From Chlorokybus atmophyticus (taxonomy: Eukaryota; Plantae; Mesostigma and Chlorokybus algae), in the NCBI GenBank assembly GCA_009103225.1, contig RHPI01000797.1:936059-1000058 (forward strand): a DNA stretch of 64,000 nucleotides. Reading direction: 5' to 3'. Numbering within the stretch: position 1 is the first letter of the stretch; every line of letters begins with the position of its first letter. The notes below the pieces were generated by a model. The model worked only from the letters and a program-made list of their open reading frames with translations, had not been told where the DNA came from and made no database searches. Shown one piece after another: positions 6,600-63,816 of this stretch. The translations under genes were made by a program, and so were the position numbers.

Positions 6600-9118
6600 T
6601 TACACCGAGTAATCATCAGACTCGCCCCCCTCATCATCATTACTAGACAACACGTCCACATCAGAGTCTGCCTCCCACTCAACAAACTCCTGCACATAAT
6701 GTGGGTTGTGGATCTTCTTCAGCTGCCTCAAGTTGGTGAAGACAAACACCAACTTCTCTGCCCTGCGTGCTTGCAGCCGATTCCTTCTCTTTGAGTGGAT
6801 GAAGTCGTACGTGCTCCAGGATCTCTCACAGCTACAAGCTGATGATGGTTGAGCCAACACGCGCATCGCTAGCTGCTGCAACTCGGGTACACTACCACCA
6901 TACATGTGCCACCAAGCATGCGCGGGCATTGTGAGAGCCGCTCGTTGCACTGCCTCTTTGCCGAACAGCCCCATCTTACTTCGGTACATGTGTAGCTGTT
7001 GCAACGCCAAGTCAACCTTGTCATGGGACTGCAGGACCCTCTCCACCATCGTTGCAAAGCCTTCCATAACTTCCTCATTGGTGTGCTGCTCATGACCCCA
7101 ATATTCGGGATCCAGCACATAGCCTGCTGCATGCATGTCACTATGCAGCATGATCCACCTGTCCCTCCAACAGGCGCGCACATCAAGTCGTTGTTGTTCA
7201 GTCATGCCCTTCAGATGCTTGAGCTGGTCGCCAACACGAAACATCTTGGCGTACACTTTGCCTATGGTGGGCAAGTTCCCATCAACCAAACGCAGCAGAT
7301 CCACGATGGGGGCCGACACCGCATTCACTAATGCCACTTGTGACCAGAAATCTGGTGCCAAGATCAACGCTCTGACTGCAGCAGCTTCTTGCTTATGCAC
7401 ACCCTTGTCGGCCCAAGCCTTCCAGTCCCTGCTCACCACCACCTCGTCGAGAGCGTCTTTGACCTCGACTAGCCTTGCAAGAGTTATGAATGACGTTGCG
7501 AAGCGAGTATCTCCTGCACAACAAGTAGCTATGAGCAAACAAGCACGCGCATGACATGAGCATGCATGCATGCGCGGGCAATCAGCTGCAATTTCACATG
7601 GTTGCTGTCTACCATTAATCTTGCGCTTGTACTAAGTTGATCTCTAACTACACACATGCACGCATGCTATTTCACCTGGCTTGAGCAGCTCTAGCTTGGC
7701 TTTGGAGCGGAAGATGGCCAAGGAACGATGGTGGTTGGTAATGAACTTCACTATGCGTTTGCCATCAGCCACCACGCTTTTAACCCACTCCAACTTGCCT
7801 ATATCCTCAAGCAATAAGTCCAAGCAATGCGCGGTGCACGGCGTCCATGTGATGTGCGGGTATTCGCTAGTGATCAGACGTGCAGCAGCTACGCACACGC
7901 TTGCATTGTCCATGACAACTTGTATCACATTCGCGGACCCCACCTGCAAGTTACACACATAAGTACTTGTGTTGTGTGCGTGTATGAGCATGCGTGTGTG
8001 ATGCATGTGCTCACAAAGTGCTGCCAGTCAGTGCGTGCATGTGTCACACGCATAAGTACTTGTGTTGTGTGCGAGCATGAGCATGCGCGTGTAATGCATG
8101 TGCTCACAAAGTGCTGCCAGTCAGTGCATGCATGTGTCACACGCATGCGTACTTGTGTCGGGTGCGAGCATGAGCATGCGCGTGTGATGCATGTGCTCAT
8201 AAAGTGCTGCCAGTCAGTGCTTGCATGTGTTACTTAGCATGGTTGTGTACACAATCTATAATGGCAATGAACGAGTGCACCACTTACTTCATCAATGGTG
8301 GAGATCAGCTGCTCGGATACATACTCCGCCGTCTTCTCCTTCCCTTCCGTGTTGATTGCTTGAAGAAAAACTTCTCCTTTAGGACTCACCATGAGCACAT
8401 TCAACAATGGACGGTTGGACGTGTCCGACCATCCATCGCTAGCAATTGTGCATGAGGTTTCTCGTGTTGAGTCCTTGATGACTGCAAGTTCGCCATTCAC
8501 CCTAGCATACTCCTTTTCCAACAAGGTTGTGCGAAGCGCCTCGGATGAGGGAGGGGTATATGAAGCGCCAAACTTGCCAACCGCTTTCATTGCTGCGATA
8601 AAGTAAGGGGACCTTGCCACGTTGAAGGGGATGCCATTGCTGAAGAAAAACCGAGCAATGGCTTCATCCACATGCGCTTTATCCCCACGCTTGAAAGTTG
8701 CATCAAGAGTTTGTTGTTGACTAGAAGGAACGGTGGCGCTTGAATCTATAGCACAATGTGATTGATTTGATGCGTGATGAGCAGCACCACTGCTTGCCAA
8801 GCTTCAATGCATGCACGCATGCATTCAAGTACCTGCACCAGCATCCCCAATGGCGGATGTGAGTTGATCTAGCAAGTCCAACCTCCTCCTCTTCTCACCC
8901 TCTTTCTCCTTGTCTTTCTTGGCTTGTGTAAGTTGCAAGACGATCTCCTCGGGAGGGGTTGTGCACTTGGTGACTCCACGTTCACCACTCAGATGGGCAC
9001 CAATACGTGAAACACTTCCTGTCCACTCGTGCTCGCAATAAACACACCTCACACGAAAGTTGCCATGAGGCTTTCTCTCTATTATGTCGACGTGCTTCCA
9101 CAGCGCACTTTGCGTCAT
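6600..9118 (-). CDS. hAT transposase (BED zinc finger, DUF659-like region, hAT C-terminal dimerisation domain), ~641 aa, 4 exons
   Basis: Proposed exons 9118-8833, 8745-8288, 7943-7676 and 7513-6600 sum to 1926 nt in frame. Motifs: WKHV..CVYC..H (BED), SDGWSD, VMDNA, CTAHCLDLLLED, PGDTRF, SSACSCERSWS. Confidence 0.9.
7953..8232. repeat. Three-copy 93-bp minisatellite in hAT intron 2
   Basis: The CAT(AA/GC)GTACTTGTG unit recurs at 7958, 8051 and 8144. Confidence 0.9.
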
Positions 9119-13106: not shown

Positions 13107-14339
13107 CATATGTGCACGTAAACGAATGCACACCTCAGCGCGCACATAATAACTGACACACATGCATGCACGCACACCACGAGAGACACAACAACACACA
13201 CGCACACACTGCATTGCAACTCTGGCCTGAACTGACGCACATAATTGCATAAATTGCATTGCACAAGCGTGTGCACACTCGCACTTACTCACAGCCACAT
13301 CCACACCCGCGCATTGCACTGCACGCGGGCGAGAAGCACATTGTGCATTTGTTCTGTTTGCATAACCTTCAATATATCACAGCCCTAACAAGTAATATAG
13401 TAATATACATCTGTATCACAGATTTGGAATGGCGTCAAAGCTGAAGATCATGTACATTGTATGTGATCAGATGCAATGCATATGACAACTTGACATAAAT
13501 ATTATTTGAAGTTGGCATATCTCTTAGAATCAATAATTGCAATGACATTTGTTCAAATGAGATAAGTTGAAGTGTATGCAAAAGTTGTCCTCTCGATTAT
13601 GTATGCAACAGCAACGTAGTGACATATGCTGCACATCCAATTTTGACTCAACCACGAATAGATAAATGAAGTTGTTAAGCCACCTAAGTTACTTTTCTCG
13701 TATCGCTCTTAGCGGCCACGCTGGAGCGGCTGCTCAACATCACATATTAAGATCTATAACAGTTATGACTAAATATCTTTATGGCTCTCATGCAATGTCA
13801 TGGGAGCCACTATCACGGGGGGGAGGTCGTGTCGCCAAGTTTCACAGAGTAGCCGGTACATATCGGCCGTGTGAGCGAGCGTTTATAGCGGTCGCGCAAT
13901 AATTCAAAGCCGGTTGATTGGCAGTCGACCTCCGGAAACGTCTGGATCTCACGGCGGCTAATCGACGAGCTGCTCGATTAGCACGATGAAATTGTAATTG
14001 GCATGTAGGTATACACATGAGCTTCACAAAAGCAAATACACTCACCCAACACCTCAAACCCAACGTCCCAACTTAACCCGCATGTGTTATGCTCTCATCA
14101 ACGAGCGGTGCGGCTGATTGGGCGTGTGATTGGGCCGGCCGGCATTAGGCACAAGACACACACCATCAGGCCATCAGTGACATACGGCACCCGCGACTGC
14201 CGGGCTGCGCGGTATGCGCGGCCCGCCTGCCTCTCATTGGCTAGGCGACAATTATTAGCTATCCGCCGTTCAATCTGTCAACACAAATCTCGACCGTCCA
14301 AAGCTCATCCCCTTGTCATGCAACTGCTCAAAATATATG

Positions 14340-14720
14340 CGAACTATATATACTTTATTTATGATGTTCCTGATAAGTATATGCAATTATGACTACATAT
14401 AATATTATGCATTGTAATCTATAGCAATAAGATATATATATGTATCATAAGTGCAAAATTTGTATGATATATACGCACTTATATCTGAGTAATCTTATAT
14501 CATACATACATTACATTATATATAAATAAAAGATATACATATATATTATAAAATGATACATAGCATTGTACACATTATATGCATATAATAATACACTATG
14601 TTATATCTATATATAATTTTATGTGCATAATATATATGTTACATGTGATCTTTTATACATAATATATATATATATGTATATTATATAATATATATACATA
14701 AAATATATATTGCAAAAAAT
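14340..14720. repeat. Degenerate (TA)n / AT-rich low-complexity tract
   Basis: Dense TA dinucleotide runs, e.g. aatatatatatatatgtatattatataatatatatac. Confidence 0.75.
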
Positions 14721-16262
14721 GAGGAGAATATAGTGCACATTTGGCGGCATATGGTTTCACATGGCTTATATAATCTAAACATGTCCCACATGTATTAAGA
14801 TAATGCATTAAGTTCCAGGGTCAAGTGCCATAACTTGGGGATGTTTATGAGTTTTGAGTTTGGAGTCCAGCAATGCGGGCGTGCAAATCCACATGCACAA
14901 TATCTCTGATGTAGCAAAATGTTGCGAGATGATAACATATGCGACGATATGGTGCAACATGGTGCAATATTAGCAAATGCTGTTAAGTGTTTCAAAACTT
15001 AATAATCAACGTAACGTTCACGCCACGGTACGTGCTGCGATACTCAGTACATAATGCTGAGGTTACGACCATCAAAATAATGCTAACCTGAATTACCTTA
15101 ACGTTAAGATTCAACTAAACGAAAAATTGCATCGTTAGGCCACCATTTGGTCACGCATGAGATTGATCAAATGGGATCGCAACGGTGACAACAGCCAGTT
15201 GCTCAAAAAGGCAGCGAAATAACCAATCATTGCAAAGATGCGTAAAAGATGCTGAAAAATATCTCAGCGGCAACCGCCTACCAACGGCGACCAAAGCTGC
15301 CAGGGATTTGGTGCAATTGCGGCACAATTAGTGGTTAAAACGGCCGCGTTTTTGGCGGTACGAGGTCGGGGCAAGTCCTATACCCCAAAGACATGCCGCC
15401 ACTACTCACCCTCGTTCTAACTAATCCACTGTACCCTTTAATGCTAATTGATTACACGCTATAGTTACTGCGTCATCAAACATGGTCAACAGCCGAACCA
15501 CTTGAATGACTGTACACCTAAGTGTACAGCTAAACTGGCAAAATCCTTACTCTATCAACTGTGTCTTATGCACAACTGATCCAAATGAGGTCAAACTACT
15601 TTTAATATATTGTTTTTCGATAAAAAAAAAGGATAATGTATCTAAACGCTCAATTTTTCTGGTCTATGCATAGGGGCGTGCCCACAAGGTCACTGAAGCG
15701 TATATTAAGCTAAATTCCTAATGTAAAGCTATAAGACATTTGTTAAGTGATTAATTTATTTCTGCACTTGCGCAACCGAATATGCACGGCTACGATACAC
15801 ATGTAATCCATGCAGATTGACACAGCCAGCTATTAATAAAATAAACATTGAAAGATGCTTGAATTGTATACATCACAATTTAACTATATCTTTTATTTTA
15901 ATTACAAAACTGACTTTTTACGTTAAAAAGTCATTGCTATTGAACATGTTTAAATATCAGCCCCTCCACAATGGCTCAACCACGTTCGTGCTGAAGGGGG
16001 CCTTTTCATCAGGGCGGGTTTCAAAACAGTTTGTGCTTCAATACTTATAGGGCATACGCTACCAAACTACTACCAGGCAACCTCTCATGCATGCCTGGAG
16101 TCTCTTAGCCAGGCTGTGTGCTTATGTAGAGGTCTATAAGTTGTAGGTCTCTAGGCCACGTTGTGCACGGCTTCCACAGCGCGAACTCTCACGCCGGAAC
16201 ACACATTGTACCCGCCGCTGCCTTGATACAAATGACAATCATCACTGTTCGCGCCAAATGAC

Positions 16263-16303: not shown

Positions 16304-18315
16304 TGCAAAGCACGTTGCTGTTAACTCGGTGTAACGATTCTTATCAAGCGGCGCAGATCTTCTGCGTCGACCGATTGAAAGGCAGCAGGAGTGTCACTTG
16401 TACCTAATAAGGATTGTTAGCGTATTCGACAATTACCGTGTTATTTAAACATGCGTGTACCAAGGGAGGGACTAGCAATGCATGCTTGAGACCCATTTGG
16501 TACGGCGCTATTTAGGCCGAGATGACAACTTTCATGTACGGCGAAGTGCAGATCTATGAATTAACGTTACTGGCTTTGTAAGTTAATTCGTCATGCATGA
16601 TGCTGGCGCGGATGAGGTGCAATTGCGCTAGGGCCCTGGTGATTGCCCCTTCCAGCGAAAACCAGTGCATCACGACTCATAACCAACGCTACATACCGTA
16701 TTGTTTACTGTATTGGGTAATACCAGGTATGACACTGATGTGATGATAGTGAGCGTTTGATTCATGCAGCGCCCCAAGTGACTCAAATGATGTGCAAGTA
16801 TTCATGAAGTCAATAGGCTTCAATACGTGTGGCCTAGCGTGAATCTTCAGTGAGGCGTGGTCAATCCAGTCCGCCTTGCGAAGCACGCGCGCACGTGAAA
16901 GCGCTGAGTCCGAGTCGCACCCGCCGGAATGCATTGGCGCGGTCGAACTGGACTTGCGATTATTTTATTGGGTGGGAACGTCTCACTCGTATACGACACT
17001 CCACCCGCGTTACAGGTCACCAGTCTTGACGCTGGTGGGCCTTGCAGTGCGGCGGCGGCGGCGGCGGCGGCGAGGAGACCAGGCTGGGCTGGACGGTTCT
17101 CAGCGGGAGAGTGTGGTGTTAATATGGTAAGTCAGGACGTGGCCTACGAAGGCTTTGCATGCATGGCTAGCGGCGATGGTAGTGTCACTCTCTTTGGGGA
17201 CGTTGCTGCTGCTGGTGGTGTCCGTGTTTGTCGGTGTCGATCGCTGCCTAACCGCATTCCTGGTGGTTTGGAGTCGCATAGTTGCTGTTATGGTCGCAAG
17301 CTGTCACAAACGAGGCAACCGAGCATGACGCTTGTGTCGCAAGCATGTGTCGACGTGACAGCCACGCTTGTTACTGCCAAGCTCTTGTTACTGTCAAGCT
17401 CACCGATAGTGATAGACTGGCACTACATTTTGCTTTGTTGTGCAATAAGCTCGGGTCGTGTCCTAGGGCGTTGAAGCTTTCGTTTCGTACTGTTGTCCGA
17501 TAGCAGTACTTCTGTTGACACTGTATACAAAAACACTACTGTCAAACCGGGTACGAAGCCAGCTTCAAAAGTAGTCCACCATTGACTTTTTAGCCTACTT
17601 TGCTCTCAGTCGAGTTCAGCTATCTGGTGTCATGTCAGCGTCGGAGCTGTCGCAGCAGCGGGGGCCAGTGAGCAGTACTCAAGTAGCTGTCGAGTATGGT
17701 GTTATCGAGCGCATTGTCTGCAGTAGTGTGTATGCGCAGTGGGCAGCAATGCTTGCAGGTCGAGTATACTCGTTCCAGAGATGCCAAAATGCACATGGTT
17801 TTATTGTGATGGGACAGCTGGCACTTGTCACGTCAGTCACGGTGTCAACCACTGGATCCTGCTTCGTCTCAAGCTGTTATTGTGTGATGAGACAGCTGGT
17901 GCTCCTCTTACTGGTCCCTTGGACACTACGCAAGCACGGCAGTACACGATTCTCGCACATAGTGGAGCAGTGTAGAACTAGTTTGCTGCGTTACTGTCAC
18001 GCATGCGGCTTGTGTGAATACTCCGCCTTGTACAAGTGCCGTTGCTTTGGTTGACAGCAACCCAGCGTCTGTGCGTGCGTGCGTGACTGCTTGGAAGCAT
18101 GTGCGTGTGCGCTGCTTTGAGTTGAGCCGACCACCCTGTACAATCCGTAGTAGTAGCCTTTAACGTTGTCAGCTGCGAAATCTGCCTTCATGCTTTCTTA
18201 GCAAGTGTACTCACCTCCTGTGCTGCACCTTTCAGTTCAGTCAAGGCCAGCTAGCTCTCACCTATGCGAACAAGTGAAGTGCGGAGGAGGGACCAGCGGC
18301 GGACACTCTGTCCGG

Positions 18316-21300
18316 ATGTTGGCACCGGCGTGTGCCCTTCTGCTGTGTTGTCTGATTGCCTCCGTCGCTGCACAATGCCCGCCCGTCGCCAACCCTGCTT
18401 CCGGCTGCGCACCTGTCACTGAGCCGTACCCCATTTATCTCCCCAATTGGTACAGCTCACTAGGGGGCAAGGTACGTTTCCATTACAGCACACATATATG
18501 CGCACGCATGCATGCGGTCACAATAGGCTCCATACAAGCGCATCAATGATTCAGCCACATCAAACGCACAGCGCACACATCGTTGGTTTGTCAAGATGAC
18601 GTGTTAGACTAGTTCCCTCGTCCCTGTGTGTCACACAATGGTGTAGTTGTCTTGGCACGAAGCTGCGGCTGCAGTGGTCAAACCAGCTGTGTTGTTGCAC
18701 ATGGTGCTAATCATGTTCATTGACATGGCAGGTGCGTGATGTCAATGGACAAGCACTGGGCTTTACGTATGTGGAGAAGCCCAGCTTAGGGGTGGGCTAC
18801 ATCCGCGAGAACCTGAGAGTGTCCTACGGCAGGCTCATTATCACAACAACTCCCGGCGCTGATGATAGCAACAGGAATGATCAGGTAGGGGTCTAACATG
18901 CACGCTTGGTATCAAGTCTACGGTGCCACGGTGCCAATACTGTGCTGTCTGCAGGACAATAGGCTGGGCTTTGGCTTTCAGAACCCTTCCACCCCATTGA
19001 CCCTCACCACAGTGATAGAGAATCCCCAACTGTTTGGGTCCCAGTATGATCAGGCCGGCTTGTGGCTTGGGACCAATGAAGACAATTTTGTCAAGTTCAT
19101 AGTGATCGCTTGGCCAGACATAGGCTGGCGCTTGCAGGTACCTATTCACTTAACAATCAGGAAGTATCCAAACCGATGGTGCTTGGCAACATCACAGGCT
19201 GCAAGTTGACACACGCACATATGCCGTCACTGACGTTTCGTGGTGCAGCTGCTAGTTGAGATCAGCGGAAATGCTGGAGTAGTTGCTGAGACTGTGGACT
19301 TGACAACCTCGGTGAGCCGAACAACCGTGACGCTATCACTGGTTGTTAATGACGCGACCAACACGGTGCTGGGTCGTTGGTCCACTGCGGATGGTAGATC
19401 TGGCACTGTGGGTCCATTGCGAATAACGGGCCAAACGCCATGGAACCGTGGAGCAAGCGCTTGGGCTTATGGTGAGTGTTGTTTTGAGTGCATGCGCATG
19501 CGATATGTTGTTGTTATCCTCACGCGCATGCTGGTCGGCATCTAGGTGGTATCTTCGCCACACAATCGCGCGACACTGCGAAGGCCGGCACAGTGTCCTA
19601 CAGCTTTAAGAGCTTTTCTGCCACTGTGGCACCCTCGGTGAGTAGAGCGCTGCTGCTCGAAGACGCCTCTGCGAAGGTGATGCGGGCACTTGTCCTTGCA
19701 GCACAGCTTGCATTGATGATGAACCCTCTCCCTCCCTCCCTCCGTCTGTGTTGTCTTGCAGCCTTCTCCCCCTCCCCCTCCCCGGCCCCCTCCCCCTTNN
19801 NNNNNNNNNNNNNNNNNNNNNNNNNNNNNNNNNNNNNNNNNNNNNNNNNNNNNNNNNNNNNNNNNNNCCCCGGCCCCCTCCCCCTTCCCCGCCTCCCCCT
19901 CCCCCTTACAACCCCTGCCCTCCCGTTGCCAACCCAGCACGAGGATGCGATCCAGTCACCAGGGCATACCCGATCGGCATATCCAATTGGTACAATGAAA
20001 TGGGCGGCAAGGTGAGAGCTTTGCGACTTGTATCCATCTGAAGTTCTATCCTTCACAGTAACTTGTTGATGTGTGGTTCGAGTGCCAATACTTACGCTGC
20101 AGTTTGCCTTTCAACGTGTAGGTCTATGACGCGAATGGTTTCTATTTGGGCTTCACGTACGTGGAGGATCCAACAGCCGGTGTTGGTTTCCTGCCAAATA
20201 ACTTGCGAGCAGCATATGGAAGACTGACCATCACAGCCAATGCTGGCTCGGCTGATAGCACCAAAAACAGCCAGGTACGCTTACTCTGTCGGGAAATATT
20301 GTCTTACTAAGCATGTACCTAAGCCAACCTCAGCTTTTGGTCATGTTGTTGAACTTCAATCAAATAAGCTTCTACTGAGTTATCGCTCGCAGCATTCATG
20401 TCCCTCACAACGTACGCGAGCTGCACCTCTCTTATTGATGTGTGCATTCTTGTAGGACAACCGCCTAGGCTTTGGGTTTGCCAACCCTTCCAGGGCAGTA
20501 ACACTTCAGACGGTGGTGGAGGATCCGCGCCTCTTCGGCAGCCAGTATGACCAGGCGGGCTTGTGGCTCGGGACCAACGAGGACAACTTTGTCAAGCTCA
20601 TTGTTGTCGCATGGCCTAAAATTGGCTACCGCATCCAGGTAACAGCAGTGTTTCAACTCCCTCTCTATCACCTTTGCAGTCAATGGAATACTCACGCACT
20701 CGTGGCCGTGCAGCTACTGGTTGAGGTCGGTGCTGTGACAGTTGCACAGGAGGTGGCCACCGTGACCGGCGAGTCTCTAAGCCAGACCACTGTCGCACTG
20801 TCCTTGACAATCGATCCAGTGGCTAGCACCGTCAGAGCCAGGTGGTCCACAGGGGATGGCAGGGCTGGCAGTCTAGGCCCTCTGGAGGTCACTGGCAACA
20901 CGCCCTGGGTCCGCGGTGCCAACCCATGGGCATATGGTGAGTGCTTCACAGCACCTTCGTCCAGCATGCATGCTTGTGCGTGTGCAGCATGCACACGCGT
21001 GCACGTGAGCGCGCGCGTGTGCGAGTGCATGTGCGTGCATGCGGGCGCGTGTGTGCGAATGTGCCTGATTCATCTGGTCGGCATGGCAGGTGGTATCTTC
21101 ACTTCGCAAGCACGTGACACTGCACCCACCGGCAGTGTATCCTATACATTCAGAAACTTTTATGCCAGTGTGGCACCACCGGTGAGCACGCAGCATTCGC
21201 TGCACACATCATGAAATGCAGACGTCGAAGCTTTGCTGGTACTGATATGAGCTTGTGTGGTTGTCGTGCAGCCTCCTCCTCCTCCGCGCCCACCTCCACC

Positions 21301-24300
21301 CCCACCCCGACCTCCACCTCCTCCCCCACCTTCTCCACCTCCTCCCCCTTCTCCACCTCCCCCCAACCCTTGCCCTCCAATTGCCAAGCCGGCGGCCATA
21401 TGTGCACCTGTCACTGCACCGTATCCCATTTTGTCCTCCAGCTGGTACAGCGAGCAGGGAGGCAAGGTGCGCCTTCGCATTCAAGCTCTATGCCCTAAAC
21501 CAGTCCAAACCATATAGCTGGATGTCTATGTGTTACCCGCAAGCCATAACCAATGTTTGTAACTTGTCAACCAGGTCTTTGACGCGAATGGTTGGCTTCT
21601 TGGCTTCACTTATGTCGAGCAGCCTAGCAAAGGCGCTGGATATCTGCCGAGCAACCTCCACGTCTCTTATGGACGCTTGATCGTCACCGTCAATGCTGGC
21701 TCCGCAGATAGCACCAGGAACAGTCAGGTAAGCTCATGCATGCGCAATGCGCTGCCGACTACTGTTTGAGAGACTGTTGCGATGAATGTTGTGTTGAAGT
21801 CCTGCTGCCATTCGTGCATACATGTCAGTATCTGAGCAACTTGTTTGTTTGTTTACAGGACAACCGGCTCGGCTATGGGCTTCTCACTCCCTCCACTCCA
21901 CTCACGATGAACACAGTTGTTGAAAAACCGCTCTTGTTCGGTGGCCAGTATGACCAGGCGGGGCTATGGCTTGGAACCGATGAGGACAACTTTGTCAAAT
22001 TTGTTGTCATCGCATGGCCAAATGGTGGCTACCGCTTGCAGGTGCACATTCGCAAACCAGACCCCATACATAGCATAGCATGGCAAGGCACAAGTTGTTG
22101 CCATCTAACACAAGCGTTGCGTTTGCTCGAGCAGCTGTTAATTGAGATCGCCACAACAACAGTCGAGCAGGCAGTCACGGTTGTGACGGGTGGAACCCTC
22201 AGCGCAACCACCATTTCCCTCTCCCTGACTGTTGACCCCACAGACAGCACAGTGGCAGCCAGCTGGTTCACAGAGGACGGCAGGTCAGGCAATCTTGGGC
22301 CGTTGAGCACTGGTGCTGCTAAGCCATGGAACGATGCAGGAAACGTTTGGTCTTATGGTGAGCAAATGCACCTGGTCTGGAGCTGTCTGTCCGTGGGAAG
22401 AGGTCCTTGAACTTGTTGTTGACCTTTAGCTGCGTGACAAATATGTAGGCGGCATCTTCGCCACACAATCCAGAGACCCCGCACCGGTTGGAACCGTGTC
22501 CTACACGTTCAAAAGCTTCTCTGCCGATGTGGCTCCACCATCGGTGAGCACTGTACTATTCATGTGGCATGTGTGCGTGTGAGCGTCCATCTGTACATGG
22601 AAGTGGGAGTGAGTACATATGCTTATGCGTCCATGAAGTTTTCTACGAGGCTGTTAACTCTGCTTGTTGTGCTCCTCAGCCTCCACCCCCTCCTCCACCC
22701 TCTCCTCCACCCCCTAGCCCTGCCCCTCCTGCCAGTCCATGTGACCCGACCAATCCCAGCCCGCCTGCAAGCTGCGGCTTCCCGGCGATTGTGCCACTGC
22801 CGGCCGCATTGGACTGGTCGCGCAACGAGTTCTTCCTTGGTAGGAACTTGGACACAATGCAACAGTCATGCATGCCATTCGTGTAGGAGATGCTCAATAT
22901 TACTTGCGTTGGGTTGCAGCTAAGGATGTCAATGGAGTTGGCACGGGTTTCAGCCATGTAGCACCTGGTGATTATTGGACTTCGGGGTACAAGCCGAAGC
23001 TGTTGCGCGTGAGCACAGGCGCTTCCAAGCTCACCGTGCAAACCACTGCTGGCACCGCTGTTGGGTAAGTGGATTGTTTGGGGCGTCGCACTTGTGCATC
23101 AAGCAGATCGAGGCCACAACATCACGTTTGCCGTGCAGGTCTGCAAACACAGCTGACAACATGTTGGCTGTTGGCGTCGGCCCTTTCCTTGCTCCCTTGG
23201 TCGTGCGGACTTCCATTGCATCCTTCCCAACCAGCAATAACGGCGAGCAGGTGACTTCCATGGACAAGTCATTGTGCACAAACTTGTTACACACTGAAGC
23301 TAACAACACCCTACTGCAGGTTGGTATCTGGGTTGGAAGCGATCAAGACAATTACGTGATATTGGGCGTTGTGAACACTGCGGGAGGCCAAGTGCTGCAT
23401 CTGCTGGTAACCAGATGTTGAAACAACATGACGCCTCTGTTCTGTGGTAGTTTGCATGCGTATCTCATGGATGGCGCTTTTAGGTTGAATCCAACGGGGT
23501 GACGCCGTCTGGCTCTTTGTTGGAAGTACCTCTCTCCAATGGATTGACCTCAGGTTTTGATCTGGAACTGACATTGGACCCGGTCACCAAGCGTGCATCC
23601 GGCAGGCAAGTTACTAGTATGCATCCGGATAGCACAGCATCAATGTCAAGCCCCAATGCTGTAAATGCCAGCTGAACTTTCTTTGCTTGTATACAGGCTG
23701 TGGACCTCCTCCCAGGCAAATGCTGTCTCGACAGGGTCTTTGCTTGCCAGAGACTCGTCATGGTGGGCAGGTTCAACACCCGGCAACATGGTGACTTATT
23801 CCGGGATCTGCTCAACGAAAGGGTCAGCAGCGGCGTTCACTGTCGACATCACCCTCTTCTCCGTCCGCGAGGTGTGCAAAATTTTGAGCGTGCTGCACTG
23901 TTTGGAAGATAAGACGACACTTGGTGTGTGTGCACATGTGTAACCTGCTATGCTTGCCAGGTGTGTCCGTGCTGCGTGCCAGCTGGTGCAGCTCCTGCCA
24001 GCGGCTGTCCCGTGGCGATATCGACTGATGCAGATGAGAAGGTTCTCGACGACGCCTGGCTAGCTCATTCCCGCCTCGTGGACCTGTTCCAGGCCCGCGA
24101 CGCTCTGCACGACGTGCACAACTCGTCTGCAGTAACTGTCTCGAATCCCAGTGGTGAGTGGTGCTGTATGCAAGTACCATCAATAAAATGCACATGTTGG
24201 TGCGTGTTCTACAACCCACGTATGCATCATCGCAGGCTCCGATGTGTCTCTGCAAGTTGTAGTGAGAGGGCCCTGGCGCCTGCTCACGCCTGGTGTTGTC

Positions 24301-26184
24301 ACGGTACCTGCTGGTGGAGCTGTGACGATCAGGGTTTTGTACGTGGACGGCGTCAAGGATGTTGACTGCGTGCACCTGACCGGCCAATCCAATGGCACTC
24401 TCAGCATCCAGGTGAGTCTGGCTGGGGGCGTATAGCTGACTGCAAGAGTGTAACACAAGGCCACTTCGCCACTTGAGTGTTATTATGTCACTGAGTCGCC
24501 TTTGTGCAGGTCAACTCGGATTCCTACAACACCATCGTGTTGCGTGGCCTTTGGGCTCAGGCGGGAGAGTACTGCGTGAAGCCCAAGTATCCCAGCAGGC
24601 AAGATCACACAAAGCAACACTGATGTTGTGTGCAACGTTATGCTTGAAAGCTGTCTCATATGCAAGCCGCACTACATACTCAACTGTGTGCTGGAGCAGG
24701 TTTTACTACTCCGAGCCAACAGTTGCAGAGATTGGGTGGGTGTTTGGTGTGACCACCAAGTTCATTGATGACGGCGTGCCACTCAACCGGTATGGCGCAC
24801 CCGACAATGGCCAAGGGTGAGCAGGTTGCCAGTGTGCACAAGTGCACAGCTTGCCCCCCCCGCCCCNNNNNNNNNNNNNNNNNNNNNNNNNNNNNNNNNN
24901 NNNNNNNNNNNNNNNNNNNNNNNNNNNNNNNNNNNNNNNNNNNNNNNNNNNNNNNNNNNNNNNNNNNNNNNNNNNNNNNNNNNNNNNNNNNNNNNNNNNN
25001 NNNNNNNNNNNNNNNNNNNNNNNNNNNNNNNNNNNNNNNNNNNNNNNNNNNNNNNNNNNNNNNNNNNNNNNNNNNNNNNNNNNNNNNNNNNNNNNNGCCC
25101 CCCCCCCACACGCGCATGCGCACACGCACATGCGCAAGGCAGCCAGGGTGGCTGCTGTTCTCGGGTTGTAACCCTTTTTGCTGTGCAGTGCCTACCAAGC
25201 GACTGGGGAGGAATTCTTGGTGGATTACTTGCAGAGTCCCATTGGGTCCGTGCGCGTGAAGCAGATCGCTGCTTATCACACGGTACTCACCTTGCCACCC
25301 TCCCCTGCTGCAGCATTACTGCTGATGTTGTGTTGTTCTGATCATCTGGCTATGTGTGCGCTGCAGTGTTGCAACGGATTCGATTCCACACAGTACACGC
25401 CAGCTGGCTACAGGCCTGCACTGGACCCGCCCGTGTTGATCGAGGACTTTCCTGTGAGCTGGCTGCAGAAGCCCGACAAGACGCAGAGTCTGCTGCCAAC
25501 TGGACTAACTAGCAGCGGAGCAGAGTATCCTCTGGACTCCACCATCCAAATGGGCACCAGCTTTGGCTTGCTGGTAGGCAGGAGAGAGTGTGTATCTCTG
25601 CATGCTTAGTGAGTGCGAGCATGCATGTGTGAATCTCCATGCGTGCATCTGTGTGTATGTGTGTGTGCGCGCGCGCGCATGTGTGCGAGACTCCCGTGTA
25701 CGCCACTGTTCGTGCACACTCTTGTGTTTTTACTTACTGGATTCGCCTGCGCAGATAAATAGGGAGACCAGTGAGATGTTCACCAATGCGACACTGATGA
25801 TCGATCAGCTGACTGATAAGAATGGCGTGACTGACTGGGAAGGGTGCACCACCATCCCATACTGCGGAAAGTTTGTTAGATACTTCCCGGTCAGGGATTG
25901 GCAGCGGCAGATTGTGCCGCAGATGGTGTTTGTCTTCATGGACTACGTTCCCTCCGGCAACTTTGACTGGAATGGTAAGCACCAGGGTCGTGGTGTTGTT
26001 CAGTCATTGTGACTCCACAATGGGTTCCTATTGCCATTCGTGGTCATGTGAATGTTAGCCTATGTGCGTGCACACTGAAGCTTCTTGTGCTGCTGGTGCA
26101 GACAATGTCTACGTCATTTGGAACGCTGTACCAGACTACCGATTGAACTCGTTCCCGACGCCTCTGCCATCACTGCGTAAATGA
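18316..26184 (+). CDS. Large secreted multi-module protein (~1500 aa, ~29 exons): signal peptide, 4 ConA-like/DUF1349-like beta modules separated by Pro-rich linkers, and an Ig-like plus bacterial-type C-terminal region
   Basis: Signal peptide MLAPACALLLCCLIASVAA|Q. Three near-identical repeats (GFTYVE.P..G.GY...NL..YGRL.IT...DNRLG.G...QYDQAGLWLGT.EDNFVK) with exon sizes 153/183/223/92-95, then a diverged fourth copy. The C-terminus includes EPTVAEIGWVFG, VKQIAAYHT, QSLLP, FVRYFPVRD and MDY...NFDWNDNVYVIWN, with the stop at 26184. An N gap lies inside a Pro-rich exon. An in-frame upstream ATG may exist at 17124. Confidence 0.88.
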
Positions 26185-27202
26185 CGTGGTGCGTCTGAGA
26201 GGCGGTGTGAATTTCCCGTATGCAATTTTGCAAGTTGATGTGTTGTAGTAGATTGACACTGTCAGGCATTGGTTGCACTGCAGTAGTTGTTGTTATGTCC
26301 AGGTAGTGTGCCAGCTGCAGCACTGGCTTAGAGTTGGGTCTACACCCACAACGTAAATAATGATTTGCAGCCATTGTGTCCATTGAACTCGGCAGTACAG
26401 CGCATGGGACGCATGTCTCCTTCAAATTGTCCCCCACCCGGTATTGTTCTCGTTGGCACATGCTGCACATCAATGCTACTTAGCACCGCGCTTGCCTCCA
26501 TGATCTGCTAGCCTTGCTTTGCATGGCAAGTTTCTTTTCTTCAACTCGTACTTCACTGCGATGTCTGGTGATTGCGCAATGCCAGCATATCAAAAGTTGA
26601 TGAACATTATTGTGTACATGATATCTGACGTGCCATTCCACATAGCAAGTATCAGAGACGGCCCATGTGTACTCTGTGTGACGATGGACATGCAAAAGTT
26701 TGATTATAAGCTTATACTTTGCATAACCCCATAACAACATTGCATAACTCATGTAAAAACAATGTGAAGCGCAATTGTGTTGACTGCCATCCCACCTTGC
26801 GATGCAGTATATCGCATTTGCCGCAATAGGCAATCACCCTGGTTGGATTGCATTGTAGGCACGACCTACCTGCCTGCTAGCAAATCATTATCACCTCTCG
26901 TGATACTCAGTCCAGTGGTGGCGCACAACCAGTGAAGAAGCGAAGTGTCAAAGGCATAGTAAAAACACAGTCGAAGACAAAGACAAATTCATCATCCTGG
27001 CAGCCTAGCTCTTTTCGGCCGAATAGGATTTGAACTGCGTTGAAGTGCAACCGGCAATGCATATGCAACTTGTATTAGTGACAAACACCCAACAAATGTG
27101 AACGGCATAACATAATGCTGCAGTTGGATATGCAATGCGAGACCCAACACCATCTGCATATTTTCTAGTAGCAACCACGATCACAGTCATACTACATCAC
27201 AG

Positions 27203-29642
27203 TCATGTCCTGAACACTGTGTCCAACTCAGTGGGCTTCAAGCGGTTCACGACCTCGTGCTGCTTTCGCCTCTGCTTCGCCTTCACCCTTTTCGTGTACT
27301 TGCTGGCATTCGCTCTCTTCTCCATCGCGCGCGTCTGCGCAACCAGCAGAGTGCGTGCTCTTGGCCAAAGCAATGTGAGGCGTGAGGCATCCTGTTGGTG
27401 TTTTTGACACCAACAGGATGTGCCACTAGCTGCGCTCAAGCCAGCTGCCAAGACACAGACAAGCGCTTACCAGGTTAGGGGAGACGTAATTGGGATTCTC
27501 ATACAGCGTTGGCCCTCCAAAACTCCCAGCAAAAACCTTGATTGGATTCAGACAAAACCGCGGACCAACCTGCCCGAAGGCAACAACTCATTGCATCAGG
27601 GATCGTGCATTACACAAAAAGTCAAAACCCTCCTTCACGCCAACATGTGATAGCCAACAATGCATACAAGGTAAACTGCACACAAACATACCTCGACCAG
27701 AGTCATCTTTTCCAATGCAGACTTGTCAAGCTTGCCTTTATGCTGCGGCTGTGCCACCTGCCAATGCCTTTGCATCAGCACACTGTTTGGCAATCCCGTC
27801 ACGCACACGGAACTAGCTTGATGCAGCGCTTGCTTCAGCAGACATGTTTGCAAATACCTGGTAGTTACGGAACCATATCCGGTTGTCAACCAAAGTAAAC
27901 GTCAAGATATGGTCAAAGAACGGCTTGCTTTTCCGATGGTCGCGAGGCGTATCAAAAACCTACACCACATTCAAGACGGTAACAGAACTCTCAATACTTT
28001 CGGCTGATACCAAAAACGCTTGCAAAATTGTAAACAACAGACTTCTGCCACCCAGTGATCATGTGCACACCTGAATAAGCATCTCCTTCAACACCCGTAA
28101 GTGGGGCTGTGTATCAAACACGGGTTCGAAGCTCAGCACCGGCCGGGAGCCCTTCAGGTGATTACCAGTCAGCTTCAACTCCGCCATGGTGTGGACTGAA
28201 ACAAGCAGTGAACGTGTTGTGATGCATGGAATGCATGTGGCAAACGACTACACTCATGCGCTTGTGGGTGGTAATCAACCTTGACACACACACGCCCACA
28301 TGCAGTAAAATATGCAAAAGCCCTTACTGTTGTTGACCAGGAACTTAACGCACGGCCCATTAGGAGTCTTTGACAGCCACATGTACAGGTCTTTATGTTT
28401 CCTGGCCTGGATAGTAATGACACGGACACATTGATGACCAAAAGCTTGTTTGACAAAGAGTGCATAGCCCCAACCATATGAGCAAAGAGCGTTACTGACT
28501 TCGAAAAAGAGGCAAGAAGAGCATGACTTCAAGTCGGCGATCTCGTTCAACACCTGGCGGTCATCCTTCGTGTCGAGCTTCACATCCTTCTTTGAATGCG
28601 GGAGCAAGGCAAGAATATCCGTCATCAGGTGACGATACCTGCAGAGGTTGATTGCATGAGAGACAACTCGATGCCATAGACAGCAAAAAAAACACACTTT
28701 GCACCTGTTGCAATAGGTGAGAAGAAAAGAGGCATGCACATGACATGACAATAAACTCGAGTACACCTAATTGCATGGAATGATAGCACGGTACAGAGCT
28801 TGCAATGTGCATTTGCTGCAAAGGTTGTTGTACGCTGAACTGTTGATGCAGTTGCGGAGACAGAATTCTTGTGTCACAAACCATTATGGACAAAGACCAT
28901 GGCACGGAGAGCTTGCCAGTAGCTATCACTGCAACAGAGTATCAAGTGACAGATTGCAAGTTAGTCAATTGGTGCATGCACGATGGACTGACTTGCCACT
29001 AGCTACCATTAGAGTAAAGCAGTTTGCGACAGCGACTGCCAGCATGCACAATGGAGTGACTCGGTCACTGCAAGCACTAAGCCACCTGCTGTACACTGAT
29101 CAATACGAAAGTTCACAATACGCACAATCAACTGCGTGGCCTGGTGGTGAACAAACATTACTACATGTATGCTGCCTTCATAGTAGGTGCTCGGTTTTCT
29201 CCCGACCCTCACCATCTTTGGATAATGTAACATAATTGGCTATTGATTGCCAGCTATTGACAACATGCCAAACATCAACTGTTGCAAACTGCATGCAATG
29301 CAAATGCTAGTGCCAGGCATTGGCAGCATGACACACACAGCTGTCGCAAATTATAACTGGCACATTGCCGATGTCTGCATTCAGAGCCAGCATGACTGTA
29401 ATCAGGCTACAGACGCTAACACAAACACAAACAAAACACTTGCATGCAACCAGCTGCTACACAAACAATAAAGCGGCTAACCTGAAGGTGATTCCTCTCG
29501 ACGACAGCACCAGCACCTTCTCCTTGTTGACAAAGTCCTCCTCCTTCTCCTCAGCAGCGCCGCCATTGCTCAGCACAGCCCCCGGCGCCGTGCCCCCGGC
29601 GCCGTCATCGTCATCCGTCGCAGCCTTGCGCTTGCGCCCCAT
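27203..29642 (-). CDS. BRX1: Ribosome biogenesis protein BRX1 (Brix domain)
   Basis: Spliced motifs KEKVLVLSSRGITFR, YRHLM.DILALLPHSKKDVKLDTK, HTMAELKLTGNHLKGSRPVLSF, KSKPFFDH, RIWFRNYQ and VGPRFCLNPIKVFAGSFGGPTLYENP. Confidence 0.95.
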
Positions 29643-59568: not shown

Positions 59569-60219
59569 TGTCACCTGTGAGTTGGTCCAATCCACAACCT
59601 GCTCACCAAGACACGGTATTCACACCGGAACCTTGCCCCCTCTGCCAAGCACACGCGCGCCCCGCCACTCGCGTACGCACGCGCATGCGCTCGAAGCTAC
59701 ACACCGACTTGTGTAGCGCCTTGGATCGTCACACAAGCAAGCACACACCAGTGGCCACACGCTAGCAACCTATGCTAACCACCACCAAGCTTGCACACCA
59801 GAAACTAGGGAGCTAAAGGTTGTATTGCAAGTTGTAGAATGTCACTTTTATACCTACCAGTCTGCACATGCTAATGTCTAGACGATTCTAGCGCTAGACG
59901 GAACTAGAAGCTAAGATATTCTTGCAGAATCTTGTAGTACACTTCTAGAACTTTCCAACGCACCAAAGATCTCCGAATTTGCTGCTCATATGGTCAAGTT
60001 ATACTACTTGGCGCCAGGCCCTTCCAGAAATCTGGTCGAGCCCTTCTCGACTGGCCCTCCGTTTTCTGGCACCTTCCGGACTGGTCTTGGGGCCCCGGTC
60101 GATATCCGCGGCAGACTCATAACTCGCCGATATCCGCCACAAGTCATTGAAAACATGTACCTTACAAATAAGGCCTAAAACGGCCATGAAAATCACAGAA
60201 TTTGGCCTTGACTGTTACA
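59569..60219 (-). repeat. 3' LTR (~651 bp, TGTAAC...GTGACA)
   Basis: On the minus strand it starts TGTAAC directly after the PPT and contains TATAAAA (59846-59852). The distal end GTGACA at 59569 is preferred; an alternative GTCACA lies near 59550. Confidence 0.75.
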
Positions 60220-63200: not shown

Positions 63201-63816
63201 TTCCTCAGTTGCACATAAGAGATCTGGGCAATTGTCGTACCACCTAATTGTGCGTGCCGCGCCTCGATGACGTCCGATGCAGCTTGAATGGACTCTCCAC
63301 CGTTTCGCTCGATGGTGAGCACGCGCTTCCTCCAATTGATGGCTGGATTATGTTGCCATAGCCACGGTAGTCCCAAAATCCCATCAAACCCGTTCCGTAG
63401 GGTGATGCAGCAAAATCGCATGCTCTCCTTCATCTTCCCAATGCGAACGCACAACTCTTTGGTCATAAATGCAGCGCCATCACCTCCAGAGGGTGGCTCT
63501 CCATCAGCGAGCTTCACTTCACCTCCTCGTAATGACAAAAGCCAACCGTAACGCCGCGCAATATCAATACTCATAAAGTTGCTGTTGGCACCGCTATCAA
63601 TCATGAGCTTACACTCTCTCCATCGTCCTTCGTCATCGCAAATGTGTGCTCGAAGCCCGAAGTACTTTGTTGTCTCCTCGTTTGCATAACTCACAACCAT
63701 TGGCGCGTTCAAAGCCATCTCTTCTTGCTTCTTTAATGGAAATGTCACAGCATCCGTCCGTGCATGAGGCTCCTTCCTATCCCCAGCAGTAGCCTCCTCA
63801 CCTACTGGGGGAAGTC
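60215..63816 (-). CDS. Retrotransposon Pol: aspartic protease, RT, RNase H, integrase, chromodomain
   Basis: LMIDSGANSNF (PR), YLDDILVY (RT), LACDASD (RH), H-H-C-C and DFITGLP..SDRD..GQTER (IN), and a chromodomain EWEVEDIL...FLVKWKGY...SWEP. The frame is open up to the frameshift site. Confidence 0.96.
60220..60232 (-). other. Polypurine tract
   Basis: GGGGGGGGAGGAG on the minus strand immediately before the LTR TG. Confidence 0.85.

Follow-up and report, generated by a model that had tools for sequence, protein, structure and literature searches.

A spliced Chlorokybus gene for a putative lectin-like matrix glycoprotein built from parts of probable bacterial ancestry

A nuclear, spliced and expressed gene of Chlorokybus atmophyticus encodes a large modular protein, and sequence comparison supports well a bacterial ancestry of its repeated module and of its C-terminal domain. 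It occupies positions 18316-26184 of the plus strand of a 64,000-nucleotide stretch of contig RHPI01000797.1, here called the window, from whose first letter all coordinates are counted. The product is probably a secreted, multivalent, lectin-like matrix glycoprotein, and the gene is a good candidate for ancient transfer from a bacterium to the alga.

Gene model, transcripts and assembly gaps

The single gene comprises 29 exons, as the initial annotation had estimated, and 28 introns of 69-372 nt each (26 GT-AG and two GC-AG); its ATG (18316) and stop codon also agree with the limits given there. The encoded protein has about 1,480 residues and consists, in order, of a signal peptide, four modules with linkers between them, a Cys-rich spacer, a PapD/ASH-type Ig domain and a domain of about 250 aa, named domain X in this paper (Table 1). 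Splice sites are of the consensus type, and spliced transcript contigs derived from two studies agree with the model. Contigs X1 (2,988 nt, 0 differences to the genome) and X2 (4,843 nt, 17 differences), both placed on 19700-25600, omit the introns at the modelled positions, both GC-AG introns included, among the joints listed, and the coordinates of the transcript records sum to the modelled lengths of exons 8-27, with exon 8 ending at 20638. By arithmetic, X2 extends about 360 nt past the stop codon. X2 represents a slightly different strain.

Table 1. Features of the gene in window coordinates.
Feature	Position	Strand	Basis
ATG and predicted signal peptide with hydrophobic core (...SVAA/Q)	18316..18372	+	Exon 1 translation; aligns with P0001 N-terminus
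Module 1: Cys-pair prefix and ConA-like sandwich (remainder of exon 1, exons 2-5)	18373..19637	+	
Pro-rich linker 1 (PSPPPPPRPPPP...PRPPPPSPPPPPP), contains gap 1	19762..19906	+	Flanking 19-mer, X2 transcript
Module 2 (end of exon 6, exons 7-10)	19907..21181	+	Transcript contigs cover these exons
Pro-rich linker 2 (P5RP6RP7SP5SP4)	21272..21361	+	Exon 11 translation
Module 3 (end of exon 11, exons 12-15)	21362..22543	+	Transcript joints
Pro-rich linker 3 (P7SP4SPAPPAS)	22680..22736	+	Exon 16 translation
Divergent module 4 (last part of exon 16, exons 17-21)	22737..23871	+	GC-AG joint in transcripts
Cys-rich spacer (VCPCCVP...GC) plus Ig-like domain of the PapD/ASH type (exons 22 and 23, start of 24)	23961..24560	+	Alignment A2
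Domain X (end of exon 24, exons 25-29)	24561..26181	+	Alignment, fold search
Stop codon TGA	26182..26184	+	Exon translation

Two runs of N interrupt the locus. Gap 2 (24867-25096) sits within intron 25 and hides no exon, since the transcripts join 24816 straight to 25189 and exons 25 and 26 align to neighbouring residues (688-724 and 728-757) of P0001, a Chlorokybus paralogue. Gap 1 (19799-19867) lies within exon 6, in the sequence coding for linker 1, and breaks the reading frame if taken as written (69 N). An identical 19-mer closes its left flank and opens its right flank in equal codon phase, the X2 record allows at most 196 nt for the 5'UTR plus exon 6 as against 250 nt as written, and the depth in the gap 1 bin is equivalent to about 48 covered nt, which is expected if the flanks overlap. 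This N run is therefore probably an overestimated assembly artefact, with a continuous frame across it and an approximate length for linker 1.

Modules, linkers and the C-terminal region

The signal peptide proposed in the initial annotation was found in the exon 1 translation, with a predicted length of 19-20 residues, and the four module copies proposed there were recovered as three close copies and a divergent one, each of about 250 aa. Modules 1-3 have 42-81% amino acid identity per exon; they keep identical intron positions though the introns themselves can no longer be aligned, which suggests that the duplication followed intron gain. Module 4 is only 17-35% identical to modules 1-3 (exon pairs compared), its intron positions are unlike theirs and it contains a GC-AG intron (23606-23696); the corresponding copy in P0001 (module B) shares homology with that protein's module A (E 3e-14). 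The linkers are of the SP4-5/RP4-7 type, rich in SPPPP(P) and RPPPP, and the Tyr cross-link motifs seen in classical extensins are absent from them. They had been described as extensin-like linkers ending in a Cys pair. The Pro-rich linkers and the Cys pairs are indeed present, but the pair, which precedes every module, is assigned to the module N-terminus and not to the linker because the bacterial copies also carry it.

The AF2 model of module A of P0001 (pLDDT 85.7), a protein with 38-73% identity per exon to the window protein, on which the folds were modelled in place of the window protein itself, matched the C-terminal ConA-like domains of GH43 enzymes with Z values of 16-19.7 across about 207 residues (VIA-align), as well as two single-domain structures, 3mep at Z 15.9 and 3o12 with a Foldseek E-value of 7.6e-9. 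Pfam searches with 47 module sequences matched only GH43_C2 and DUF1349, the algal scores lying under the gathering cut-offs (19 bits vs 32.4 and 22.7), and exon 3 of module 1 gave a weak DUF1349 match. The ConA-like/DUF1349-type assignment of the initial annotation is thus confirmed, at the level of a modelled fold and weak Pfam matches, the module being a ConA-like sandwich akin to DUF1349 and GH43_C2 domains. The jelly-roll sandwich is common to the module, to DUF1349 (PF07081) and GH43_C2 (PF17851) and to the solved 3o12, 3mep and GH43 beta-xylosidase C-termini (6ms3, 5joz, 3c2u), and the two Pfam models match weakly at the region of the motif Q-A-G-L-(W/x)-x-G-x-(D/N)-(E/Q)-D-N. Unlike them, the algal and bacterial modules begin with an extension of their own that bears the Cys pair, and they carry the motif D.NG.GTGF.

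A distinct C-terminal region was also present as proposed, with about 390 aa. Its Ig part (model residues 6-96) matched MSP/ASH/PapD domains at Z 7.5-8.2, and the corresponding part of the bacterial relatives matches HYDIN_VesB_CFA65-like_Ig and choice-of-anchor D. Domain X, whose introns include a GC-AG intron at 24599-24699, carries the motifs LRGLW, EP..EI..FG, GEEF, VKQIAAYHTCC, QSLLP, FGL, CGKFVRYFPVRD and MDY..GNFDWNDNVY..N..P; the C-terminal motifs quoted in the initial annotation proved to be conserved columns of its alignment. Nine columns of domain X are invariant among the 35 sequences of alignment A2, and all nine are retained in the window exons. No Pfam or NCBIfam model was found to cover the domain, and the models PF07472 and PF13448 did not match.

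Among 48,161 chains, the best non-Ig matches of the AF2 model of domain X (pLDDT 79) were the two-calcium lectin PA-IIL/LecB (1gzt; 107/114 residues superposed on the core, rmsd 3.3), at Z 8.1, a borderline value that for a beta-sandwich may reflect a common arrangement, and thrombocorticin (7f91) at Z 6.5. The core of domain X most resembles a Ca-dependent lectin of the PA-IIL/LecB kind (PF07472; related DUF4114, PF13448), although this likeness is borderline. By the ranges aligned, the conserved loop D309/N314/D316/D319 coincides in position with the calcium loop of PA-IIL, a placement that in part assumes how the calcium ligands of PA-IIL are numbered. In PA-IIL two calciums are held by a long beta-hairpin loop (PMC1903359), and in the model the acidic D..N.D.(N/Q)D loop of domain X, near the C-terminal end, appears to take the place of this calcium/sugar loop (PMC1903359; PMC9109919). 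Domain X has about double the length of LecB and differs from it also by insertions and by an additional sub-domain at the N-terminus; the approximately 60 residues that precede the core gave no structural match. It forms one polypeptide with the Ig domain and thus cannot borrow the C-terminal carboxylate of a neighbouring subunit as the LecB tetramer does.

Relatives in Chlorokybus and in bacteria

The closest known protein is P0001 itself (Chrsp119S01758, 922 aa, EukProt/JGI Chlat1), which is listed without annotation as "hypothetical" and of whose identifier no mention was found in a literature search. Its parts follow the order of the window protein (signal peptide, Cys-pair module A, Pro linker, divergent module B, Cys-rich spacer, Ig, domain X), and every window exon is collinear with it; it has one A-type module as against three, and a single short Pro run. 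Searching exon 28 against 1.84 billion representatives returned only this paralogue and a 141-aa metagenome fragment, and word-index searches with the paralogue gave bacterial, metagenomic or Chlorokybus matches only. Across the 1.84 and 5.8 billion proteins searched, Chlorokybus was the one eukaryotic genus to yield homologues. The nearest relatives beyond the genus are bacterial, as the initial annotation had supposed; best hits were not widespread eukaryotic proteins and the C-terminal region did not lack bacterial homologues, the two outcomes it had named as contrary to its proposal.

Domain X is encoded at no fewer than 324 confirmed bacterial loci (contigs of one genome per species) in more than 10 phyla, including Planctomycetota, Cyanobacteriota and others besides the four named in the initial annotation, Actinomycetota, Deinococcota, Chloroflexota and Bacteroidota. 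The expected union of module and C-terminal domain in the same bacterial proteins was observed as well: the module adjoins domain X in about 40 of the 80 loci retained, in several bacterial phyla. In the Trueperaceae ORF L064 (L064:124-3639), module, Ig and domain X follow the algal order, collinear with P0001 297-908 in one BLASTP alignment of about 610 residues (26% identity, E 1e-31) that includes the spacer and the HTCC motif and reaches both C-termini. Such surface or secreted multidomain proteins (L064, P0007, P0036, P0046 of Deinococcus yavapaiensis) combine choice-of-anchor D/ASH Ig with domain X, with or without the module, and have the motifs AAYHTCC and MDY..NYDY(Q/N)DN in common with the alga. 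Unlike the window gene, they are without introns, Pro-rich rods or a tandem module array; all are uncharacterised. Their additional parts include malectin, NPCBM, CBM96, fn3 and a second degenerate domain X, and malectin, NPCBM, CBM96, DUF1349-like and 3-keto-disaccharide-hydrolase-like modules are interchangeable among bacterial domain X proteins.

In the domain X tree, the algal branch is very long (2.18 substitutions per site) and has no supported bacterial sister; at midpoint rooting the alga falls outside all sampled bacterial groups. In the module tree, both P0001 modules cluster with that of the algal protein P0055 (SH-aLRT 91), and the sister of this group is P0056, a prokaryote-like metagenome protein (98). 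Modules from bacterial module-Ig-X proteins fall elsewhere, and the present architecture could thus have been re-assembled in the alga.

Origin and proposed function

An artefact, in the form of bacterial contamination or mis-assembly across the two N runs, might be suspected from the gaps and from the frame broken by gap 1 as written. It is ruled out for practical purposes, and its residual probability is negligible, by the 28 spliceosomal introns, by single transcript contigs (X1 and X2) that cross both gap regions and all modules, by the collinearity of all exons with P0001 and by neighbouring genes and transposons of eukaryotic type (Brix-domain exon, Ty3/gypsy element, hAT remnant). That nothing was transferred into the alga, the family being either ancient, vertical and lost in nearly all eukaryotes or passed from alga to bacteria, is highly improbable. 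The identity of only 22-31% to any bacterial sequence, the midpoint rooting and the metagenome fragment P0005, nearer the alga than any bacterium (53%) and possibly from another eukaryote, would suit it; vertical descent, however, needs dozens of independent losses, with one eukaryotic genus among all proteins searched, and export to bacteria leaves their far greater diversity and domain combinations unexplained. A more serious, though still doubtful, alternative is that the parts are bacterial but were acquired separately, the module with a P0055/P0056-type gene and domain X apart, and then shuffled inside the alga, which would make the collinearity with the Trueperaceae protein a coincidence. 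The module grouping, the collinearity of P0055 with P0056 across 904 residues and the introns and Pro-rich linkers bounding every module argue for it; against it stand the proneness of long algal branches to long-branch attraction, the single ordered alignment with L064 and the several phyla with module beside domain X.

As to function, it is rather unlikely that domain X is catalytic, as an undescribed family of glycoside hydrolases or polysaccharide lyases with the ConA-like modules as its targeting CBMs, so that the algal protein would be a secreted enzyme remodelling wall or mucilage, or degrading bacterial glycans, and not a lectin. Its constancy in bacterial proteins whose carbohydrate-binding modules vary, the invariant E113 and E155 with a conserved acidic cluster, and the unmatched residues before the core point that way. 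Fold and structure searches, however, found no likeness to solved enzymes, the one fold matched by the core belongs to a Ca-dependent lectin without enzymatic activity, and some bacterial members made only of Ig domains and domain X copies (P0007) look rather like surface or adhesive proteins.

Chimeric HRGPs, such as the Solanaceae extensin-lectin chimeras, LRX proteins and volvocine pherophorins, are secreted proteins in which SP3-5-type rods join globular, often glycan-binding, extracellular-matrix domains. By analogy, the window protein seems to follow this rod-plus-globular-domain plan, with predicted Hyp glycosylation; unlike theirs, its globular domains are of bacterial type, unrelated to hevein, LRR and pherophorin domains, and no Tyr cross-linking motifs were seen. 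For the lectin-like glycoprotein that we favour, we infer secretion, sugar and calcium binding and a matrix function; "adhesin", "wall-type" and "carbohydrate-binding" would be provisional names. The signal peptide would direct the protein into the secretory pathway, and the linkers would be hydroxylated and arabinosylated into stiff rods like those of extensin-type HRGPs, holding apart the four ConA-like modules and the terminal Ig-domain X unit, whose PA-IIL/LecB-like sandwich most likely binds sugar via Ca2+. Several glycan sites per rod could cross-link or anchor wall or mucilage polysaccharides around Chlorokybus cell packets, or bind foreign glycans.

The module-Ig-domain X arrangement exists in bacteria, from which the alga would have taken up these parts long ago; signal peptide, Pro-rich linkers and introns would have been gained afterwards, and the intron-bearing module then triplicated in tandem. 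The direction and number of transfers are presumptive. A module and a domain X otherwise almost confined to bacteria occur here in an early-diverging streptophyte alga, where they may serve in its extracellular matrix.

Gene structure, transcripts and neighbourhood

The hand-built gene model (window 17800-26700 examined) comprises 29 exons on the forward strand, running from an ATG at 18316 to a TGA at 26182-26184, and its start, stop and exon count agree with the extent and the approximately 29 exons proposed in the initial annotation. The 28 introns range from 69 to 372 nt; 26 are of the GT-AG type and two of the GC-AG type, the latter with the donors GCAAGT and GCAAGA. The G+C content is 57% in exons vs 50% in introns. 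The locus was present in four public sequencing runs from two studies, labelled only "RNA?", and the best two contained 0.45 and 0.35 of the sampled words, which is the value expected from spliced RNA. Two transcript contigs were compared with window 19700-25600. X1 (2,988 nt) showed no differences from the window and X2 (4,843 nt) showed 17 single-base differences, so X2 comes from a close strain and not from the sequenced one. The modelled introns are absent from both contigs, and contigs devoid of 20-odd segments bounded by GT and AG can only be cDNA. The lengths of exons 8-27 in the model equal the sums from the X2 record coordinates, by which approximately 360 nt of the contig remain after the stop. 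The gene is nuclear, spliced and transcribed.

Features of the window and their coordinates
Feature	Position	Strand	Remarks
hAT-family C-terminal dimerisation domain	6603-7571	-	323-aa ORF, E 1e-12
Studied gene	18316-26184	+	ATG to TGA
Module 1, part compared with module 4	18732-19637	+	
Gap 1 (N run)	19799-19867		within exon 6, in the run coding Pro-rich linker 1
Module 4, part compared with module 1	22920-23871	+	
GC-AG intron	23606-23696	+	skipped in transcript contigs
GC-AG intron	24599-24699	+	skipped in transcript contigs
Gap 2 (N run)	24867-25096		intronic; transcripts join 24816 to 25189
Brix-domain ORF	28278-28766	-	exon-sized, E 2e-6
Ty3/gypsy chromovirus-type retrotransposon pol	60215-63748	-	uninterrupted 1,177-aa ORF

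An exon hidden in gap 2 was ruled out by the transcript joint and by the collinearity with P0001, a Chlorokybus paralogue of 922 residues, in which the adjacent stretches 688-724 and 728-757 match exons 25 and 26. Gap 1, if taken as 69 N, breaks the reading frame. The 19 bases before it are identical to the 19 bases after it, and both copies begin on a codon boundary of their own frame. The X2 coordinates allow only 196 nt for the 5'UTR and exon 6, which amount to 250 nt as written in the assembly; the first-bin depth, 30 of 123, implies coverage of about 48 bases, as expected if the gap flanks overlap each other. The most economical reading is that gap 1 is spurious, which would give an exon 6 of 162 nt, a CDS of 4,449 nt and a protein of 1,482 residues, lengths to be read with X2 belonging to another strain and Pro-coding repeats varying in length.

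Integration into the nuclear genome is indicated by the 28 spliceosomal introns, the spliced transcripts and the eukaryotic neighbours. The BRX1-like neighbour named in the initial annotation was recovered as a Brix domain, in keeping with a eukaryotic context. The retrotransposon ORF encodes reverse transcriptase, RNase H, integrase zinc-binding and core, SH3-like and chromodomain segments, and looks intact; the hAT-type ORF on the other side suggests a hAT element, perhaps a nested one. The G+C content falls locally to 0.38 at 14001-16000 vs approximately 0.51 window-wide.

Protein architecture and the ConA-like module

The protein begins with a predicted signal peptide of 19-20 residues and carries four ConA-like modules, each with a Cys pair at its start (QCPPVANPASGC, NPCPPVANPARGC, NPCPPIAKPAAIC and SPCDPTNPSPPASC). 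Module 4 is followed by a Cys-rich spacer, an Ig-like domain and a C-terminal domain of approximately 250 residues, here called domain X. The linkers consist of P/S/R runs, with five SP4-6 motifs in three linkers (SPPPPP, SPPPPPP, SPPPPP, SPPPP and SPPPP) in addition to RP4-7 runs. The repeated Ser-Pro3-5 of extensin-type hydroxyproline-rich glycoproteins (HRGPs) is found here together with a predicted signal peptide, and no Tyr cross-linking motif (YXY, VYK) was found in the linkers of the translated exons. Judged from the sequence, "HRGP-like chimera" describes the protein better than "classical extensin".

Exon by exon, modules 1-3 show 42-81% protein identity and 60-74% DNA identity. All intron positions and phases are common to the three while their intron sequences no longer align, which indicates an old tandem duplication of an intron-bearing module. 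The fourth module is divergent. Compared with module 1, a further intron interrupts its conserved Q|(A/V)G(L/I)W motif, and its remaining introns are shifted by a few codons or lie elsewhere relative to modules 1-3, so introns were gained, lost or slid after the split of the A- and B-type modules. In P0001, the counterpart modules A and B share 25% identity (E 3e-14).

The fold of the module was modelled with AF2 on module A of P0001 (47-row alignment, pLDDT 85.7); exon for exon, its identity to window modules 1-3 is 49-63%, with a single exon of module 1 lower, at 34%. The model is a two-sheet jelly-roll of the ConA-like superfamily. Its closest matches are the C-terminal domains of GH43 beta-xylosidases (VIA Z 19.7, 18.1 and 17.2), and the single-domain structures 3mep (VIA Z 15.9) and 3o12 (Foldseek E 7.6e-9) were also matched. 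The only Pfam families matched by any module sequence are GH43_C2 (PF17851) and DUF1349 (PF07081), with best E-values of 1e-6 and 7e-5 among 47 module sequences. All algal scores fell short of the gathering cut-offs, both in window exon 3 (DUF1349, 19.1 bits vs 32.4) and in P0001 (DUF1349, 19.4 vs 32.4; GH43_C2, 19.1 vs 22.7). Searched singly against Pfam, the exons yielded just one weak DUF1349 match and no meaningful match for the C-terminal exons; matches to Gemin7, TPK and DUF7047 (E 0.05-0.2) were rejected as chance. Neither P0001 nor the profiles of domain X and of the module had a significant match in sequence searches of the PDB. The ConA-like/DUF1349-type assignment made in the initial annotation is thus borne out by the fold, with weak Pfam scores below the cut-off.

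Domain X and its bacterial relatives

The window exons were searched singly, and P0001 (Chlorokybus atmophyticus Chrsp119S01758) was used as the natural full-length proxy for the spliced protein. Its architecture is that of the window gene except that only one A-type module is present, and all window exons are collinear with it at 38-73% identity. A phmmer search with the 73 residues of exon 28 against 1.84 billion representatives recovered as true relatives only P0001 (74% identity) and P0005, a 141-aa fragment; the other four of the six matches (P0002, P0003, P0004 and P0006) are repeat proteins by their Pfam content and were rejected as chance. The C-terminal region of P0001 led to the bacterial proteins P0007 and P0008, the former encoded on a 439-kb contig with typical bacterial genes around it, and the search from P0007 brought in 46 more proteins. 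A scan for the domain X pattern, in which each bacterial or archaeal species was represented by a single genome, confirmed 324 loci in more than ten phyla, including Actinomycetota (Nakamurella, Nocardioides, Mumia, Serinicoccus and others), Deinococcota (Deinococcus, Trueperaceae), Chloroflexota, Bacteroidota (Pontibacter), Rhodothermota, Planctomycetota (Tepidisphaeraceae), Cyanobacteriota, Pseudomonadota, Acidobacteriota and Verrucomicrobiota. The eukaryotic proteins found, by an exhaustive search with a 73-aa query and by further searches filtered by words and length, were from Chlorokybus only. The distribution is therefore patchy in eukaryotes and broad in bacteria.

The metagenome fragment P0005 lies on a 929-nt contig (JGI sample 3300059473) and is 53% identical to the algal C-terminus, above any bacterium. 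The first approximately 40 residues of its called ORF lack similarity, which then sets in abruptly in the manner of an intron boundary; the fragment may therefore stem from another eukaryote. A metagenome scan with alga-specific motifs found no closer environmental relatives, and its sole match (L084) was rejected as an unrelated protein with CGKFFRYFP in common by chance.

The Ig-like domain and domain X of P0001 were modelled together (AF2, pLDDT 79). Model residues 6-96 form a seven-strand sandwich of the PapD/ASH/MSP type (Z 8.2 to the VAP-A MSP domain, 8.1 to the Spd-2 ASH domain and 7.7 to CupB2 and CEP192). The algal copy gave no match to sequence models; the HYDIN_VesB_CFA65-like_Ig model was matched by 14 of 35 relatives, and the Ig domain of L064, a Trueperaceae locus, is an NCBIfam "choice-of-anchor D" domain (NF012200, 68 bits). 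No Pfam or NCBIfam model covers the domain X family. Its 35-member alignment has nine invariant residues, all kept in the window exons, and the C-terminal motifs quoted in the initial annotation turned out to be conserved columns of this alignment.

With the two-domain model, Foldseek matched the Ig part alone. Among the top 50 matches to 48,161 representative chains, the only non-Ig ones were PA-IIL/LecB (1gzt_A) and the PA-IIL-like thrombocorticin (7f91, Z 6.5). The former aligned with model residues 156-327 (Z 8.1, rmsd 3.3, 107 of 114 residues), a Z value at the noise border of the tool for sandwiches, the core lying within the two-domain model. D309, N314, D316 and D319 are invariant or nearly so in the 35 sequences and are kept in the window as MDY..GNFDWN|DNVY. 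Judged from the aligned ranges, this cluster probably falls at the long hairpin loop of PA-IIL, and its residues may be equivalent to the LecB calcium ligands. In PA-IIL, the long beta-hairpin loop contains Asp96 and Asp99 and binds two Ca and the sugar (PMC1903359), and DUF4114 domains of the same lectin group were proposed as Ca and sugar binders in PilY1.1 (PMC9109919). At E <= 1, none of the 35 members matched PF07472 or PF13448 (DUF4114). The two-domain model matched unnamed bacterial clusters in the ESM Atlas (TM 0.66), as well as a cluster with an added ConA-like domain of the 3-keto-disaccharide-hydrolase type; a feature search there with exon 27 gave scores of 0.76-0.78, under the useful range.

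The module and domain X also occur together in bacteria. Local tblastn with algal and bacterial modules against 80 loci placed a module directly up- or downstream of domain X in approximately 40. The Trueperaceae ORF L064, of at least 1,171 residues, contains a choice-of-anchor D Ig domain, a degenerate domain X, a Cys-pair module, an Ig domain and domain X; in this locus (L064:124-3639, from a MAG) the degenerate copy upstream of the module reads …HHVRAYPL…EEHVSGFDYQDIVVILRNVTP. An internal domain X duplication of the same kind is seen in P0007. A single BLASTP alignment joins residues 297-908 of P0001 to Trueperaceae residues 568-1169 (26% identity, E 1e-31), takes in "AAYHTCC" and reaches the C-terminus of both proteins.

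Origin and possible function

A bacterial source is favoured by these comparisons, since the range is broad in bacteria vs a single genus in eukaryotes, the module and domain X co-occur, and the algal and bacterial proteins are collinear. The bacterial homology of the C-terminal region supposed in the initial annotation is matched by the 324 bacterial loci, and placement among widespread eukaryotic proteins, which would have spoken against its proposal of a transfer, was not found in these searches. Vertical descent would require massive loss and is unlikely. Contamination, likewise unlikely, was ruled out together with mis-assembly by the introns and the transcripts spanning the locus. The trees leave the donor phylum unnamed, since the algal branches are too long in both. 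The 81-row tree of domain X gives the alga an end branch of 2.18 substitutions per site, with no supported sister and no supported set that contains it. In the module tree, which carries a long-branch warning, the two P0001 modules group with that of P0055, another Chlorokybus protein (SH-aLRT 91), and the metagenome protein P0056 is sister to the algal modules (98), the group lying beside bacterial Cys-pair modules. The HTCC motif common to the alga and Trueperaceae may serve as a lead only.

P0055 (Chrsp2S04695) contains three Big_7-like repeats, the same ConA-like module and a glucose/sorbosone-dehydrogenase-type propeller, and is collinear with P0056 over 904 residues at 37% identity. The P0056 gene (L083:120-3716) overlaps its upstream ORF by 4 nt and is prokaryote-like. 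P0055 is thus a candidate for a further bacterial-type gene, by which the alga would have at least two such genes with the module, which may have spread within the algal genome. Neither Chlorokybus identifier was found in the literature searched, and none of the 12 titles listed, of 81 papers that pair Chlorokybus with horizontal gene transfer, concerned this family.

The protein would be secreted, its SP4-5 linkers may form Hyp-arabinosylated rods, and glycans could bind to the four ConA-like modules and to the PA-IIL-like terminal unit. In the wall or mucilage of this sarcinoid, sub-aerial alga, the protein may then serve as a multivalent cross-linker or as an anchor. We tentatively propose, as a possibility held at less than even confidence, that domain X is an unnamed, widespread bacterial family with a PA-IIL-like core, either Ca2+-dependent glycan-binding or a new carbohydrate-active enzyme family, and that Chlorokybus captured it together with the ConA-like module. 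The gene would then have been intronised and mounted on hydroxyproline-type rods, and the module multiplied and spread to at least three other algal genes, turning a bacterial glycan-recognition toolkit into an algal extracellular matrix component. The main functional rival, that domain X is catalytic, draws on its invariant glutamates E113 and E155 and on its constant presence in bacterial proteins whose CBM-like modules are exchanged; we consider it rather unlikely. The conserved acidic loop and the possibly PA-IIL-like fold yield a testable prediction of Ca-dependent sugar binding.

Chlorokybus lives sub-aerially and represents one of the earliest streptophyte branches; genes transferred from soil bacteria are regarded as a source of functions for land life in early streptophytes. 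Bacterial gene transfer into streptophyte algae and chimeric HRGP-lectins are already known kinds; the most original element here is the unnamed domain X family with its testable PA-IIL-like prediction, a large bacterial family lacking a name in curated libraries. Two bacterial building blocks appear in an intron-rich, expressed and duplicated gene of an early-branching streptophyte, which bears the marks of probable successive steps of domestication: a signal peptide and Pro-rich rods were added, introns were gained, the intron-bearing module was then duplicated in tandem, and the module spread to other genes. If located in the mucilage or wall, the protein would be a new type of chimeric HRGP-lectin and could probe the little-known matrix polysaccharides of Chlorokybus.
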